From sequence record PV754031.1: a stretch of DNA of 64,000 nt, one strand, 5' to 3'. The stretch's first letter is position 1. The number at the start of each line of letters is the position of its first letter. Both the position numbers and the translations under genes were made by a program. The notes under the pieces were generated by a model. The model made no database searches. It saw only the letters and a program-made list of their open reading frames with translations, and was not told the DNA's origin. Positions 7,093-47,651 of this stretch are shown piece after piece.

Positions 7093-7605
7093 ATGACTGA
7101 ACAGAAAGATTACACTCTAGTACGTACTCCACTAACTCATGATGAACTAAAGAAAGCATTTAAAGAAGATAACATTCATGCATCTGATGTTCAACTAGAT
7201 AGGTTAGTTAAGTTATCTGAAGAAGTATGCAGTGTTAAAGGTAATTATAACATTCGTCCTTTAGCTAACTCAAAAGGAATGGTATTTGAATTCACCAACA
7301 AAGATGGTGAGATCATTGCACTAATTCCTTTTGATATTTCAAAAGAACGTAAAAATGCCAAAATCCCAAAAACGAAATGGCTTACTGAACTTCTAAACGT
7401 TTATCGTTATAAAGTTAGTAAGATTGAAGTTAAGAATGTACTTAACATGATTATTGATTGTGTTAAGTCTGGTGGTACTTGGCAAACATACATGTGTCGA
7501 GATAAGATGGTAATCGAATTTAAATCTGATACTGGTAAAGTGGTTAATGAATTAATTGTTCATCAAGAACGAACTCATGAAGAGATCGTTACTTTTAAGC
7601 ACTGA
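7093..7605 (+). CDS. Hypothetical protein (gp38-like)
   Basis: 170-aa ORF directly upstream of phuZ. Confidence 0.75.
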   Translation: MTEQKDYTLVRTPLTHDELKKAFKEDNIHASDVQLDRLVKLSEEVCSVKGNYNIRPLANSKGMVFEFTNKDGEIIALIPFDISKERKNAKIPKTKWLTELLNVYRYKVSKIEVKNVLNMIIDCVKSGGTWQTYMCRDKMVIEFKSDTGKVVNELIVHQERTHEEIVTFKH

Positions 7606-7655
7606 TACCATTTACAAGTTGGTATATGAAATTATATTAATCACAATGAGGTGTA

Positions 7656-8639
7656 ATGATGTCTAAAGTAAAAACTCGAATTTACTTTTGTGGTGGTGCT
7701 GGTTTCCGTATTGGTGAACTATTCCATGGTTATCATGAGGATGTTTGCTACATTGATACCAGTGTACAGAATAAACACAAACACAATACTGACGATAATA
7801 CGATCATTATTGAAGCGGATACTAAGCTAGCTGACCAGACTGCACGTAAACGTGCTATCGGTATGGGTAAAGATCGTAAGGCAGCCGCAGAACTAATCTC
7901 TGCACATATTCCTGCCATTGCCCATCATTTCCCAGCAGGGGATACTAACATCGTGGTATACTCAATGGGTGGTGCTTCTGGTTCAACCATTGGTCCTTCT
8001 CTTGTTAGTCATCTACAACAACAAGGTGAAGTAGTTGTAAGTGTGGTCATTGGATCTTACGACAGTGATATTAGTCTTCGTAATAGCAGTGGTAGCCTTA
8101 AGACTTTTGAAGGGGTTTCCTCTGTTAGTAAAGTTCCGATGATTATTAACTATCATGAGAATGTTGAAGGTATACCGCAGTCAATGGTGAACCAAAACAT
8201 TCTTGAAGTACTAAATGCACTAGTAATTCTATTTAATCAAGAACACCAAAGTCTTGATCTAATGGATATCACTAACTGGGCACACTTCCATAAACACCAT
8301 GATGTACCTGTACAGACTGTGCAATTACACGTGTGTTTCGATCGTCAAGAAGCTCAGGCTATTCTGGATCCAATTTCTATTGCTTCACTATACACTGATC
8401 CTGATCGCGATGTATCAATTAGTACAGTTCTAACTCGTACTACTGGTTATGCTGATCCTGAAAAATATGATTTCGATCAAATGCATTTTGTGATCAATGG
8501 CCTATCTATTGAAGATATTCGTAAGCGATTAGAAGAACGTCGTGAAATGATGAATCGAGCCAAAGCTAATATGCGTAAGCGTCAGTCTACTCTAGATGTG
8601 GATGACCAAGCAACTAGTAGTGGTCTTGTATTCGATTAA
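7656..8639 (+). CDS. phuZ: PhuZ phage tubulin (gp39)
   Basis: FCGGAG GTP-binding loop, GGASGS tubulin signature and conserved acidic C-terminal tail; GAGGTG SD. Confidence 0.97.
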   Translation: MMSKVKTRIYFCGGAGFRIGELFHGYHEDVCYIDTSVQNKHKHNTDDNTIIIEADTKLADQTARKRAIGMGKDRKAAAELISAHIPAIAHHFPAGDTNIVVYSMGGASGSTIGPSLVSHLQQQGEVVVSVVIGSYDSDISLRNSSGSLKTFEGVSSVSKVPMIINYHENVEGIPQSMVNQNILEVLNALVILFNQEHQSLDLMDITNWAHFHKHHDVPVQTVQLHVCFDRQEAQAILDPISIASLYTDPDRDVSISTVLTRTTGYADPEKYDFDQMHFVINGLSIEDIRKRLEERREMMNRAKANMRKRQSTLDVDDQATSSGLVFD

Positions 8640-45541: not shown

Positions 45542-45592
45542 GACATAAACCCCTCTCCATGTGGAGAGGGGCCTGTCTTTATTTTTTTTTAT
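45542..45592. terminator. Bidirectional terminator
   Basis: CCCCTCTCC-ATGT-GGAGAGGGG followed by a T tract. Confidence 0.8.
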
Positions 45593-46086
45593 TTAGTTAA
45601 CGGCTTGTTTAATTCATTTAACTGGTTATTGTTATTAACAGCTTCATTATGGGTAATATTTCTACATAATTCAATTATGTATTCTACCTCAGAATAAGCT
45701 AATTCAAAGAATTCAGTTAATGACATATTAGATAAGCTACCTACTTTATACTTGAAGAAATCTCTAGTCAGTCTCCTTCTCAACCCACCTTCGATAAAGT
45801 CCTCTTTAGGATTTACCTTATTTAACCACATGGGTCCGTTTTCTGGTGAACCGATATCGTAATCAAGTAGATATGCTTCTCTTGTTAAACGTGCTGCTGT
45901 AGACGGTCTTACTGCCCCTACTGTCGATAATAGTCTATCTAAGTGTGTATCATCTTCAGTTAACTTATCATAACCAAAGTTTGGATGTAGGATGTGACCA
46001 CTATCTTCCTTGAAAGTGGCCTCAAGACGACTATATCTCAGATCATTAACTACACCATCCGGTTTGACTTCGAGGCCGCCAAAGTA
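45589..46086 (-). CDS. gp76-like coding region, probably the -1 frameshift extension of gp77 (165 aa)
   Basis: Frame open 46104 to 45589 with no ATG/GTG/TTG until 45831; entered via the T7 slippery run at 46092-46086. Confidence 0.7.
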   Translation of the reverse strand, partial: YFGGLEVKPDGVVNDLRYSRLEATFKEDSGHILHPNFGYDKLTEDDTHLDRLLSTVGAVRPSTAARLTREAYLLDYDIGSPENGPMWLNKVNPKEDFIEGGLRRRLTRDFFKYKVGSLSNMSLTEFFELAYSEVEYIIELCRNITHNEAVNNNNQLNELNKPLTK

Positions 46087-47651
46087 AAAAAAGTTGACAG
46101 CATGTCAATAGGGATTAAGTGTGGGAAACGTTCTTTAAATTTAGTAGCAGCAGGTGACTCACATACTGGACAATTCCAACTTGTAATTGCAATCATTCCA
46201 ATTAGTTGTGAATCAATGAAGTTACTCACCGCATTAATAAAGCGGTCATTATATTCCGGTGTGGATAGAATATTAGTTAAGAACTTTTCAATAGTTTCAC
46301 GATTAGTGGTTGCAGTACGAATATTGTCTTCAGAACTTTCACCATCGTCATCTTCACGTACTTTAATTTCTTTAACAAAATGTGAGAACTGACGGGCAAT
46401 AGAGATCTTTTGTAAACGTGCAATATACTGAGAACGTTGCGGACCATCGACTGGTTCATTAAAACTACCTTGAGTCATATCGATAATTGAGTTAATCCAA
46501 CTATCACCAGACTCTCGGCGATCAGCAATTGTACACATCTCAAGAACAACACCAACGTCACCAAACATTTCAGTTACTTGAGTTTCAATACGGAATCCTT
46601 CTTTATAAGTCTTAAGATCAGATTCAGTACATGCATTAAACTTACGTGCAATATATTTCTTTTGTTCTTCTGAGAATGCCAGTAGATCATATTGAACAAG
46701 CGTTGACATATTAAGTTTCGCTGTTTCAATATGGTTACATGTATTGGCATCTGCAATGCATGGATAACTATAATTAAATCCATCTGGATACATAGTCGCC
46801 GCTAGTGCGTGATGCAAGAACGGCTCATCAGCTACTGAGATAACATGCTCTAGATCAGTTGGGGTGTTGAACTTATAGTTGGATTGAATAACACATGCAA
46901 GTGCTAAACTACTAACCATGTTAAGTAACACAGCTGCCATGTTTGAGAACAGCATACCTTTTGATTCAGCGCCTAGCCGGATCTTTAATTGTGCTAGACG
47001 TGCTTGTAGGGCAGCTACTTCAGTACCAGTAGGTGCACGTAGTTTTACCCAAATACCTGAATGAGGTAGGAAAGTATCATATGGCGTACCGATGTTAGCT
47101 TTACGTGTTAGGAAAACTAGAGTTTCATCATCGGTCATTTTACGACCATTGGTATTAAATACAGGTCGGCCAGGTCGAATGATCTTTTCACCATAAGGAA
47201 TTTCACTAGACCATTCAGAACCTTCTCGGGCAGTTGCACCGATTGGTGCATCTTCAACAATAGAGTGAGCTAAGCCTTCCAGAATAGCAGCTGTCCACTT
47301 TACACCGTCACTAGTGTCATCTACTTTATTATCAGCAAATGCTTTAAATAGTTCTTTATTGTGATCCAGGAAATTATAAACAGTCTGGGGATTCTCACGT
47401 AGTAAAGTAAGAATGCTAGCACTATCTTTAATAGCCGGTTCAGAAGCATCCCGGATATTTCCAGTTTTAGCATTACGTGGAATACGTAGTTTAATTTCTT
47501 TTTGATCAGGAACGAAAGGTGGAGTTTCCACCTCGTCATTATTTTCAATACTAGAGTCAGGATCGTGTTGCGCATTGATCTCATCAATTTGATCTAGTAA
47601 ATTCTCTTCTGGAGTATCATCGTACTCATTATCGAAGTCAGCAGTAGCCAT
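46050..47651 (-). CDS. Conserved gp77-like protein (CxxC; possible tail or baseplate assembly chaperone)
   Basis: 533 aa, NCPVCES; ends LSTFFTL.. across the slippery site; GGAG SD. Confidence 0.85.
   Translation of the reverse strand: MATADFDNEYDDTPEENLLDQIDEINAQHDPDSSIENNDEVETPPFVPDQKEIKLRIPRNAKTGNIRDASEPAIKDSASILTLLRENPQTVYNFLDHNKELFKAFADNKVDDTSDGVKWTAAILEGLAHSIVEDAPIGATAREGSEWSSEIPYGEKIIRPGRPVFNTNGRKMTDDETLVFLTRKANIGTPYDTFLPHSGIWVKLRAPTGTEVAALQARLAQLKIRLGAESKGMLFSNMAAVLLNMVSSLALACVIQSNYKFNTPTDLEHVISVADEPFLHHALAATMYPDGFNYSYPCIADANTCNHIETAKLNMSTLVQYDLLAFSEEQKKYIARKFNACTESDLKTYKEGFRIETQVTEMFGDVGVVLEMCTIADRRESGDSWINSIIDMTQGSFNEPVDGPQRSQYIARLQKISIARQFSHFVKEIKVREDDDGESSEDNIRTATTNRETIEKFLTNILSTPEYNDRFINAVSNFIDSQLIGMIAITSWNCPVCESPAATKFKERFPHLIPIDMLSTFFTLAASKSNRMV

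Follow-up and report, generated by a model that had tools for sequence, protein, structure and literature searches.

The window analyzed here, a stretch of 64,000 nucleotides from sequence record PV754031.1, has a phiKZ-type phage as its source and carries the following features around the 3' end of its gp77 gene, in the numbering of the window.

46050..47651, minus strand: gp77 (PHIKZ077 equivalent), the 0-frame ORF, whose translation gives the short product of 533 aa
46086..46092, minus strand: putative slip site, a run of seven T's (T7) in the sequence, phased T TTT TTT on the conserved Phe521-Phe522 codons
45589..46104, minus strand: -1 reading frame, open for 171 codons in translation, with its stop at 45591-45589
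46050..46085, minus strand: dual-coding overlap, made up of the 0-frame tail of 11 codons and the first 12 codons of the -1 extension
45832..46049, minus strand: start-less coding stretch of the -1 frame, unannotated in RefSeq phiKZ
45589..45831, minus strand: 80-aa ORF (PHIKZ076.4 equivalent), the sole annotated part of the extension, with a helical C-terminal segment
46077..46583, minus strand: gp77 residues 357 to 525, homologous to the C-terminal half of T4-type gp26 by hhalign and Foldseek and including the CPxC motif and Phe-Phe
45550..45571, no strand assigned: G+C-rich hairpin of 9 bp, terminator-like on both strands, 18 nt past the -1-frame stop

The gp77 gene ends in TCA ACT TTT TTT ACT TTG, with the run at 46092-46086 on the minus strand, and 11 sense codons follow the run before the TAG at 46052-46050. 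Six codons ahead of the run, at 46104, the -1 frame becomes open, and it continues past the run for 165 sense codons up to the TAA at 45591-45589. The earliest ATG, GTG, or TTG of this frame in phiKZ is the ATG at 45831, 85 codons in, at which RefSeq phiKZ starts PHIKZ076.4 (80 aa), leaving 219 nt unannotated. A long product that crosses frames at the run is predicted by arithmetic to have 687 aa, of which residues 1 to 522 are common with the 533-aa form and 165 aa form the extension. A preliminary description, made from the sequence of the window alone, had delineated the ORFs, the phasing of the heptamer, the 11 and 165 codons, and the gap before the first start; each of its coordinates proved correct, and the two sizes that it predicted, 533 and 687 aa, agree arithmetically. 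In the AF2 model of gp77, the 0-frame tail is part of a predicted helix spanning residues 517 to 532. The gp78-gp77 transcription unit likely ends at the hairpin at 45550..45571. T7 runs per se are not unusual in the AT-rich window (23 observed versus 33 ± 8 expected), and the significance of this one comes from comparative data.

The T7 run is fixed in 47 of 47 near-identical phiKZ-type genomes, in which tblastn searches with each frame covered the run at 99 to 100% identity, indicating that it is neither a sequencing error nor a length-variable tract. The comparison also included 31 divergent gp77 homologs from jumbo phages, one per lineage, with protein identities of 16 to 54% and comprising Pseudomonas, Erwinia, Ralstonia, Xanthomonas, Salmonella, Vibrio, Aeromonas, Klebsiella, and Bacillus phages. 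All 31 lineages have an in-phase run of T5 to T8 at the same alignment columns, on the Phe-Phe codons, and a 0-frame stop 8 to 45 codons past the run. The downstream frame, which is homologous in all of them and 153 to 190 codons long, is unbroken between the run and the 0-frame stop and stands in the -1 relation in every lineage, although the tail lengths vary; in one lineage (L032), it opens exactly at the T run. TTT makes up 0 to 62% of the Phe codons in gp77-family ORFs and is found at the slip site in 23 of 23 lineages; even in the GC-rich Xoo-sp14, where it accounts for 0 of the 14 Phe codons of the ORF, TTT is still present at the slip site. The slip site is also the sole run of six or more T's in the ORF wherever the run at the site reaches that length. 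At least 10 lineages, among them PA1C, the Noxifer group, L028, L135, and L136, have T5 only, and these sites read N TTT TTC or NTT TTT, which is no canonical X XXY YYZ heptamer, indicating that two-tRNA slippage is not universal. All relatives keep at minimum an in-phase U UUY tetramer inside the T5 to T8 run, and most have the canonical heptamer. The gp77 family comprises 1684 protein clusters. Phe-Phe is conserved in 127 of the top 129 clusters, with a 0-frame tail of 8 to 34 aa, and the two clusters that lack it still have an in-phase T5 run and a -1 ORF. The survival of a fused, single-ORF ancestral form among these top 129 clusters was considered and rejected, as none was found.

Homology among the -1 products begins at the slip site, as seen in an alignment of 29 extension sequences and in tblastn searches, in which the matches of the -1 frame to distant phages begin at residues 1 to 6. 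The unannotated stretch at 45832..46049 has residues conserved across genera in the same alignment, and phrog_12109 matches -1-frame residues 32 to 169. In the first 60 nt past the 0-frame stop, the differences among relatives number 91, 55, and 162 on -1-frame codon positions 1, 2, and 3, respectively. Within-clade pairs show 44 differences in the overlap versus 308 in the next 60 nt, a substitution rate of about one quarter, and this conservation within the overlap cannot be assigned to either single frame. No conserved start or Shine-Dalgarno (SD) sequence was found near the 0-frame stop in homologs of the downstream frame, in which the first possible -1-frame starts vary in position between +23 and +261 nt and would remove some conserved residues; the frameshift proposed earlier, which an SD and start of their own in these homologs would have refuted, passes this test. 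Word-based protein searches with the extension retrieved few relatives. As far as sequence comparison reaches, the slip site, the frame relation, the missing start, the coding character of the start-less stretch, and the family-wide conservation are observations.

No conserved stimulatory element was found. The preliminary description had pointed to a GC-richer hairpin (TTTGGC/GTCAAA) after the site, and this hairpin does form in the local fold but is weak (-7 kcal/mol for 46 nt; z score of +0.83 against shuffles). It is absent from the 70-nt minimum-free-energy (MFE) fold and is not conserved, and it was rejected as a conserved stimulator. RNAalifold gave only -0.56 kcal/mol for a conserved downstream structure, without covariation, and no Rfam family matched at the site. 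Per-sequence local folds were mostly no better than shuffles, with the exception of the Psa21 clade, which has a long-range stem with a z score of about -3.6; phiKZ has a different stem, and the two were rejected as a shared element because their pairing registers differ. An SD-like core upstream of the slip site was found at 0 of 29 jumbo-phage sites. At cyanophage-type sites, such a core lies about 10 nt upstream in 56 of 72 cases, where it is confounded with conserved Glu-Gly codons. A stimulatory element is not obligatory for low-level shifting.

By profile comparison and predicted structure, gp77 is a remote, enlarged homolog of the T4-type baseplate-hub assembly chaperone gp26. The protein matches phrog_4585 (E value of 7e-196), and its AF2 model has a pLDDT of 87.9 and a pTM of 0.88. 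An hhalign comparison of the gp77-family alignment with the gp26-family alignment gave a probability of 93.4% and an E value of 2.5e-7 over 115 columns, covering the C-terminal half only and ending at the common CPxC...FF C terminus. This significance was reached only with a 10-sequence alignment; the profile was not significant against the single DLP6 gp26 or gp51 sequence. In a Foldseek search with the gp77 model, at least six BFVD models annotated as "baseplate hub assembly protein, T4-like" or "baseplate hub subunit" were matched with E values of 8e-5 to 1e-3 and target TM scores of 0.51 to 0.57. The BFVD targets are predicted and not solved structures, and Foldseek of the gp77 model against solved structures (PDB) returned nothing. 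Sequence and profile searches of Pfam, NCBIfam, and PDB with gp77 and the extension gave no informative match, and no chain of a solved structure matched either part by sequence or profile. Eighteen diverse gp77-family members matched only phrog_4585 and phrog_8054, with no match to phrog_150 or to any Pfam family, indicating that gp77 represents a separate, distantly related family. Compared with T4 gp26 (phrog_150), the C-terminal half and the predicted fold are alike up to the CPxC...Phe-Phe end, whereas gp77 has an extra N-terminal region of about 180 to 300 residues, and the 0-frame tail past Phe-Phe is 8 to 45 codons in the gp77 family and one codon in T4-like gp26. C298, C305, C494, and C497 are nearly invariant in the gp77 family, with the CPxC pair encoded at 46172-46170 (C494) and 46163-46161 (C497). 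Evidence on absence from the mature virion is indirect only: the record of phage 201phi2-1 flags the neighboring gp138 as detected by mass spectrometry and does not flag gp136 or gp135.

The same arrangement is found next to gp26 itself. In 8 of 8 non-Tequatrovirus T4-like genomes (DLP6, Syn19, P-SSM7, KVP40, phiAS5, Ochrobactrum OC, Cr30, and pf16), T TTT TTY, in a run of T6 to T7, lies one codon before the gp26 stop, with a gp51-like ORF in the -1 frame, and the same junction occurs in 73 of 74 metagenomic junctions. The domain resembling T4 gp51 (phrog_634, hub assembly catalyst) is placed behind an in-phase T TTT TTY in these phages. The preliminary description had named non-conservation of the slippery run as a finding that would refute the frameshift; the run at the Phe-Phe codons is instead conserved in phase as T5 to T8 across the 31 jumbo-phage lineages, and it is kept beyond the family, in T4-like phages too. 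In Tequatrovirus PE37, a T4-proper-type phage, gene 51 is separate, lies on the opposite strand, and encodes 250 aa, and Phe-Phe is encoded by the nonslippery TTC TTT. As far as genome comparison can provide one, PE37 is a natural control with a separate gene 51 and no slip site. In KVP40, Cr30, and DLP6, an ATG of the -1 frame sits directly at the stop of gp26, and coupled reinitiation could therefore also yield a free gp51-like peptide in some T4-like phages. A gene of the tail-tube family lies upstream of gp26 (Syn19 and KVP40), and in Cr30, the tape-measure gene lies 3' of the gp51-like ORF, with one 82-aa ORF between them. This gene order, with the tube gene upstream and, in Cr30, the tape measure downstream, is the synteny of G/GT. 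PMC3004832 counts both gp26 and gp51 among the hub assembly chaperones and gives gp51 as missing from the particle.

The evidence on the extension domain is less firm. Its AF2 model is poor (pLDDT of 51), with only residues 110 to 165 reaching a pLDDT of about 80, and Foldseek of this model matched family members only. An hhalign comparison of the extension with the gp51-like domain gave a weak similarity (P = 0.0087; probability of 4.6%) over 41 columns at the C-terminal helices, and no PHROG cross-match between the extension and the gp51 family (phrog_634) was found. The extension is 153 to 190 aa long in the gp77 family versus 60 to 70 aa for the gp51-like domain. The resemblance to gp51 that had been noted for part of the extension has only weak support from the sequence, although position and frame agree; the same position and frame beside a gp26-like gene argue for the extension being the gp51 equivalent.

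The arrangement can be compared with that of the lambda G/GT-type tail assembly chaperones, whose frameshift is credited to Xu, Hendrix, and Duda (2004), as cited in PMC9024508. In lambda G/GT, as also in P2 E/E+E', two products have a common N-terminal part, and the longer one is produced when reading shifts by -1 close to the 3' end of the first ORF. The gp77 pair resembles lambda G/GT in that the second ORF lacks an independent start, in that the arrangement has been kept although the sequences have not, and in its inferred role, which is nonstructural and in tail assembly. The phiKZ system differs in that its first protein is about four times larger (533 aa) and has a Cys4 site, its slip site is a U run on Phe-Phe codons that sometimes has only five U's, with no stimulatory element detected, and its location is away from the tail tube and tape-measure genes. 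In phiKZ, gp77 has as neighbors gp78 (unknown), gp79 (a head protein), the gene of a virion RNA polymerase subunit, and small ORFs with a helicase after them; the gp77 pair is not between tail tube and tape-measure genes and not in the tail module, and the earlier caveat that no tape-measure gene is adjacent remains valid for phiKZ. The fold of gp77 also matches T4 gp26-like proteins and not lambda-type chaperones (E > 1); Foldseek hits to annotated lambda-type tail assembly chaperones had E values of only 1.1 to 2.0 and probabilities of 0.13 to 0.33, and no Pfam or PHROG match of the gp77 pair to a chaperone family was found. Other -1 sites, such as dnaX A AAA AAG, IS-element sites, and T7 gene 10, are like that of gp77 in having a run in phase, an alternative product at a fixed ratio, and a 0-frame stop soon after. 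They are usually accompanied by an SD-like element upstream, a hairpin downstream, or both, whereas neither is conserved at the jumbo-phage gp77 sites. Long-tailed phages characteristically carry a programmed frameshift in their tail assembly chaperone genes, and to our knowledge, the T4-like and phiKZ-like phages are without a known one. The literature searched, which did not include subscription journals, contained no report of this frameshift and nothing on phiKZ gp77. The mentions of "gp77" found there refer to genes of other phages.

The explanation that we favor, with a probability of about 0.88 and on comparative sequence analysis alone, without protein, ribosome-profiling, or transcript data, is that gp77 and the downstream frame are one recoded gene that encodes a short and a long form of a chaperone. 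Most ribosomes would translate gp77 in frame and stop at 46050, giving the 533-aa protein, and a minority would slip back by one base with tRNA-Phe on the in-phase U UUU UUU (46092-46086) and read 165 more codons in the -1 frame, giving the 687-aa protein, in which the extension domain would replace the short C-terminal helix. That the shift is ribosomal and not transcriptional, its inefficiency, its function, and the production of the trans-frame protein are inferred only. The earlier proposal of a programmed -1 frameshift joining gp77 to a start-less frame is strongly supported by the comparison and not by the window alone, and protein-level evidence is lacking.

The nearest competitor, which we regard as unlikely, is transcriptional slippage, in which the phage or host RNA polymerase would stutter on the T run and add one U to some mRNAs, from which ordinary translation would give the long product. 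A one-base insertion gives exactly the -1 frame, many lineages have a homopolymer of 7 or 8 T's, neither a ribosomal stimulatory structure nor an SD was found, and phiKZ-type phages have unusual multisubunit RNA polymerases. However, at least 10 lineages have only T5, which is shorter than known polymerase slippage tracts, and the T4-like phages, with host polymerase, have T6 to T7. The run is, moreover, always phased for tRNA-Phe re-pairing in the -1 frame, although this phasing is also forced by the conserved Phe-Phe. A more remote alternative is that of two separate genes, with the downstream frame translated from a noncanonical or internal start or by termination-reinitiation and the T run a by-product of Phe-Phe. 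All database records annotate two genes and none a joined CDS, and in some T4-like phages, an ATG overlaps the gp26 stop. The 0-frame tail past Phe-Phe is also conserved as a helix, which indicates that the short product is real. This alternative is very improbable in light of the absence of a conserved start, since phiKZ has none for 85 codons and yet the stretch is conserved and evolves as coding sequence. In addition, no stop interrupts the -1 frame from the run to the 0-frame stop in any of the 31 jumbo and 8 T4-like lineages, the -1 relation holds in all lineages despite the variable tail lengths, TTT is used at the slip site against the codon bias, and Phe-Phe is TTC TTT where gene 51 is truly separate (Tequatrovirus). 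A sequencing error, to which homopolymers are prone, or a recent frameshift mutation could also have split one gene, and the two frames do meet neatly at the run. An artifact or decay of this kind is scarcely conceivable, being contradicted by the T7 run identical in 47 independently sequenced phiKZ-type genomes, by the recurrence of the split in all lineages examined, which span several phage families and sequencing technologies, by the lack of an intact fused form among the 129 clusters, and by the conserved 0-frame tail.

Under the favored reading of one recoded gene, the likeness of gp77 to gp26, together with an extension in a gp51-like place behind the same slip site, makes it most likely that the pair is lambda G/GT-like. 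The pair would act as a nonstructural assembly chaperone at a fixed ratio of short to long form, the extension would sit where T4-like phages have the gp51-like "hub assembly catalyst," and construction of the central hub and tail-tube initiation complex would require the extra domain of the long form. The preliminary description had guessed at a tail or baseplate assembly chaperone pair, and the gp26 homology and the gp26/-1/gp51-like arrangement of T4-like phages lend support to that guess; the sequence evidence points to a previously unannotated pair of this kind.

More broadly, we lean toward the view that the -1 frameshift at the Phe-Phe codons of the gp26 family is ancient, common to T4-like phages (Kyanoviridae, non-Tequatrovirus Straboviridae, and relatives) and phiKZ-like phages, and the missing counterpart of G/GT. 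It may have gone unnoticed because in a T4-proper-type phage, gene 51 stands on its own and a slip site is absent. If true, the hub and tape-measure complex would have gp26 and gp26-gp51 (gp77 and gp77-extension) as an obligatory pair of short and long chaperones, which would tie the hub assembly chaperones gp26 and gp51 to the G/GT paradigm. The "gp51-like" mini-ORFs in hundreds of genomes would then be misannotated fragments of a trans-frame product, and the tiny ORFs called "gp51-like" in cyanophages and other T4-like phages would be reread as trans-frame parts. If the gp77 site is real, the 219-nt annotation gap in phiKZ would be explained, as would the comparable gaps or arbitrary starts in every related genome. 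The natural series of U runs from T5 to T8, with or without an SD-like element, would bear on minimal frameshift signals in bacteria. Because jumbo phages are under consideration for phage therapy, correct gene models would be of practical annotation value. For the nucleus-forming jumbo phages, a core gene without an assigned function, present as 1684 clusters, would gain both a function and a second product.

The gp77 ORF ends on the minus strand with a run of seven T's that is phased as T TTT TTT and followed by 11 sense codons and TAG, and the -1 frame remains open for 165 sense codons past this run. The features of the region are as follows.

46050-47651, minus strand: gp77 ORF, 533 aa
46092-46086, minus strand: T7 run phased T TTT TTT, in the gp77 3' end TCA ACT TTT TTT ACT TTG
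46104 to 45589, minus strand: -1 frame, opening six codons upstream of the run
45550-45571, read on both strands: terminator-like, G+C-rich 9-bp hairpin 3' of the -1-frame stop

The earliest ATG, GTG, or TTG in the -1 frame is the ATG at 45831, and the RefSeq record of phiKZ annotates only the 80-aa tail of the frame (PHIKZ076.4), with 219 nt left unassigned. The factual statements of the preliminary description on the run phase, the coordinates, the 11 codons, the 165-codon frame, and the late first start all hold. The window belongs to a Pseudomonas phage of the phiKZ type. Phage Bobae is 100% identical to the window over this region, at the same coordinates, and 47 phiKZ-type genomes are 99 to 100% identical. 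All 47 of these isolates carry the T7 run, so that sequencing error, recent decay, and phase variation are excluded. T7 runs are not unusual in this AT-rich window (23 observed versus 33 ± 8 expected), and the window alone proves nothing. An A9 run directly follows the -1-frame stop and precedes the hairpin (45550-45590), with convergent small ORFs beyond. A GTG-started ORF of 132 aa (45994-46392, plus strand), antisense to the slip site and the gp77 3' end, is probably spurious; some phiKZ-type records list three CDSs under the -1-frame match, one of which may be this ORF.

The junction was read in 31 jumbo phage lineages with protein identities of 16 to 54%, sampled from Pseudomonas phages PhiPA3, 201phi2-1, PA1C, Psa21, and Noxifer, Xanthomonas phage Xoo-sp14, Erwinia phages pEa_SNUABM_54, Ea35-70, and Kwan, Ralstonia phage RSF1, Serratia phage PCH45, Klebsiella phage FBKp24, Salmonella phage SPN3US, Vibrio phage C-ZP2022, Aeromonas phage D9, Halocynthia phage JM-2012, Bacillus phage AgentSmith, two metagenomic contigs, and many IMG/VR contigs. 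An in-phase run of T5 to T8 lies at the same two codons in 31/31 lineages, the 0-frame stop follows 8 to 45 codons past it, and the -1 frame, which is uninterrupted from the run to the 0-frame stop, is open for 153 to 190 codons. A start for the -1 frame is not conserved in these lineages, the first candidates being scattered from +23 to +261 nt. In tblastn searches, the matches of distant relatives start at residues 1 to 6 of the -1-frame query, that is, at the run, and span two annotated genes. The slip-site codons encode Phe-Phe in 127 of 129 clusters, and the two exceptions keep an in-phase NTT TTT, with -1 ORFs that are 168 and 163 codons long. TTT is a minority codon in these genes (0 to 62% of Phe codons, mostly 6 to 43%; 0 of 14 in Xoo-sp14), yet it occupies the slip site in 23/23 lineages. 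Where the site has a run of at least six T's, no second run of that length occurs in the ORF. The Serratia and Klebsiella clade has an unusually long 0-frame tail, with 38 to 45 codons past Phe-Phe (PCH45, locus L009, 2239-2380; FBKp24, locus L041, 2787-2907), and its dual-coding overlap is accordingly longer than 110 nt.

The -1 products can be aligned over their entire length. Over the 60 nt past the 0-frame stop, which lie upstream of most annotated starts, differences between within-clade pairs fall on -1-frame codon positions 1, 2, and 3 as 91/55/162, the signature of a coding sequence. Change in the overlap region is about fourfold slower than in those 60 nt, as expected from dual coding. 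When 1.84 billion representative proteins were searched with the profile, 1,684 clusters matched, and among the best 150 of these all ends lie at most about 26 residues from the profile end. No fused form was present among the 129 aligned clusters, in which the tail past Phe-Phe has 8 to 34 residues.

Sequence searches of Pfam, NCBIfam, and PDB gave no match for gp77 or the extension, and in PHROGs both parts fall in families of unknown function. The AlphaFold2 model of gp77, based on a 129-sequence alignment, is confident (pLDDT, 87.9; pTM, 0.88) and places the 0-frame tail in a C-terminal helix (residues 517 to 532). Foldseek found no match for the model among solved structures. Among predicted viral structures, several models named "baseplate hub assembly protein, bacteriophage T4-like" or "baseplate hub subunit" ranked below family members, with E values of 8e-5 to 1e-3 and target TM scores of 0.51 to 0.57. 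Four cysteines are near-invariant, which suggests a zinc site linking distant parts of the chain.

46758-46760, minus strand: C298 codon
46737-46739, minus strand: C305 codon
46170-46172, minus strand: C494 codon
46161-46163, minus strand: C497 codon

The second pair forms a CPxC motif that also occurs in several T4-like gp26 proteins. In profile-profile comparison, the gp77 family matches ten T4-like gp26 proteins over 115 columns (probability, 93.4%; E value, 2.5e-7), covering gp77 residues 357 to 525 and reaching the last residue of gp26, with a Pro-Thr motif, the CPxC pair, and the Phe-Phe at the end coaligned. On the basis of this match, gp77 is an enlarged, distant homologue of gp26, its function being inferred from remote homology and synteny. 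In a review of the T4 tail, gp26 and gp51 are listed as hub assembly chaperones, gp51 being required for assembly yet absent from the particle (PMC3004832).

In eight T4-like phages outside Tequatrovirus (DLP6, Syn19, P-SSM7, KVP40, phiAS5, Ochrobactrum phage OC, Cr30, and pf16), the gp26 Phe-Phe lies one codon ahead of the stop and is encoded in phase as T TTT TTC or T TTT TTT. The DLP6 gene, obtained via the accession in PMC5349666, belongs to phrog_150, "baseplate hub." The ORF that follows gp26 is in the -1 frame in each of the eight phages, belongs to phrog_634, is annotated at 31 to 60 aa, and is labeled "baseplate hub assembly catalyst" or hypothetical. The phrog_634 frame is open back over the run, with conserved residues upstream of the annotated starts; the 60-aa ORF of DLP6 covers only positions 60 to 117 of the 121-position profile. 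The annotated mini-ORFs begin at arbitrary internal codons.

DLP6 (locus L044), 7483-8369, minus strand: gp26/gp51-like locus
Klebsiella phage 0507-KN2-1 (locus L050), 1989-2165: unannotated 58-codon -1 ORF that carries the gp51-like Met-Pro-Trp motif and starts at the gp26 3' end

In a set of 74 distinct junctions of the cyanophage type, drawn from IMG/VR, 73 show T TTT TTC and then a -1 frame of 61 to 71 codons, the remaining one being an ORF-picking artifact of the script. In the Ackermannviridae phage 0507-KN2-1, the run has just four T's (ATT TTC), and about 500 nt 3' of the gp26-like gene are unannotated. PE37, a Tequatrovirus of the T4-proper type (locus L051, 656-2483), serves as a natural control: gene 51 is separate, encodes 250 aa, and lies on the opposite strand, gene 25 follows gp26, and the nonslippery TTC TTT encodes the gp26 Phe-Phe. 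The last ~60 residues of PE37 gp51 can be aligned with the short -1 products from the other phages, and the separate gene may explain why the frameshift went unseen in the model phage. The jumbo phage extension aligns only weakly with the gp51-like domain (P = 0.0087; probability, 4.6%; 41 columns in the C-terminal helices), and their equivalence is therefore argued mainly from position and frame.

Independent initiation of the downstream frame cannot explain a conserved coding stretch that lacks a start, the choice of TTT at the site, the Tequatrovirus control, or the -1 relation found throughout; in the few T4-like phages whose gp26 stop coincides with an ATG, such initiation may yield free gp51-like peptide in addition. 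Transcriptional slippage at the T run is possible for the T7 to T8 sites but unlikely as a general mechanism, since many lineages have only T5. The best-supported explanation, for which evidence at the protein level is lacking, is that tRNA-Phe slips on the U run and the ribosome thereby shifts into the -1 frame. On U UUU UUU of phiKZ, the P-site and A-site tRNAs would both re-pair perfectly; in lineages with N UUU UUC or NUU UUU, only one tRNA would do so, and the shared minimum is thus inferred to be an in-phase U UUY tetramer. Frameshift efficiency is inferred to be probably low.

Searches for structure, Rfam families, and Shine-Dalgarno (SD)-like sequences gave no sign of a conserved stimulator in the jumbo phages. 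The consensus RNA structure was negligible (RNAalifold, -0.56 kcal/mol, with zero covariation), single-sequence folds past the run were mostly no better than shuffles, Rfam had no match at the slip site, and none of 29 jumbo phage sites has an SD-like core upstream. The hairpin that the preliminary description places after the site was not supported as a stimulator (z = +0.83 versus shuffles). An SD-like core was seen among loci L045, L047, and L052 and the 72 cyanophage-type junctions (L054-L133); at 56 of the latter 72, GAGG, GGAGG, or AGGA lies 4 to 14 nt upstream of the heptamer, mostly at ~10 nt, coinciding with conserved Glu-Gly codons. Within the first 70 nt past the run, the Psa21-like clade (L004 and L017) has a long-range stem in which the post-slip sequence pairs with conserved Ser-Arg-Leu codons ~60 nt downstream (MFE z, about -3.6). 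The phiKZ stem (46016-46077) differs and is in another register (z, -0.95), and registers are not shared across clades.

The gp77 arrangement most likely works like lambda G/GT and P2 E/E+E', but gp77 lies outside that protein family, as its fold and its gene position in phiKZ do not match; it belongs, distantly, to the gp26 lineage. The lambda order is V-G/GT-H, and T4-like phages match it, with a tail-tube family gene as the upstream neighbor of gp26 in Syn19 and KVP40 and the tape-measure gene two genes downstream in Cr30. A joined CDS was absent from the ~30 GenBank/RefSeq records examined. No report of a frameshift for gp77, gp26, or gp51 was found in the literature; subscription journals were mostly not covered, and an earlier description is not excluded. 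Frameshifting in tail assembly would thus extend to a further gene family and to a broad range of phages new to it.
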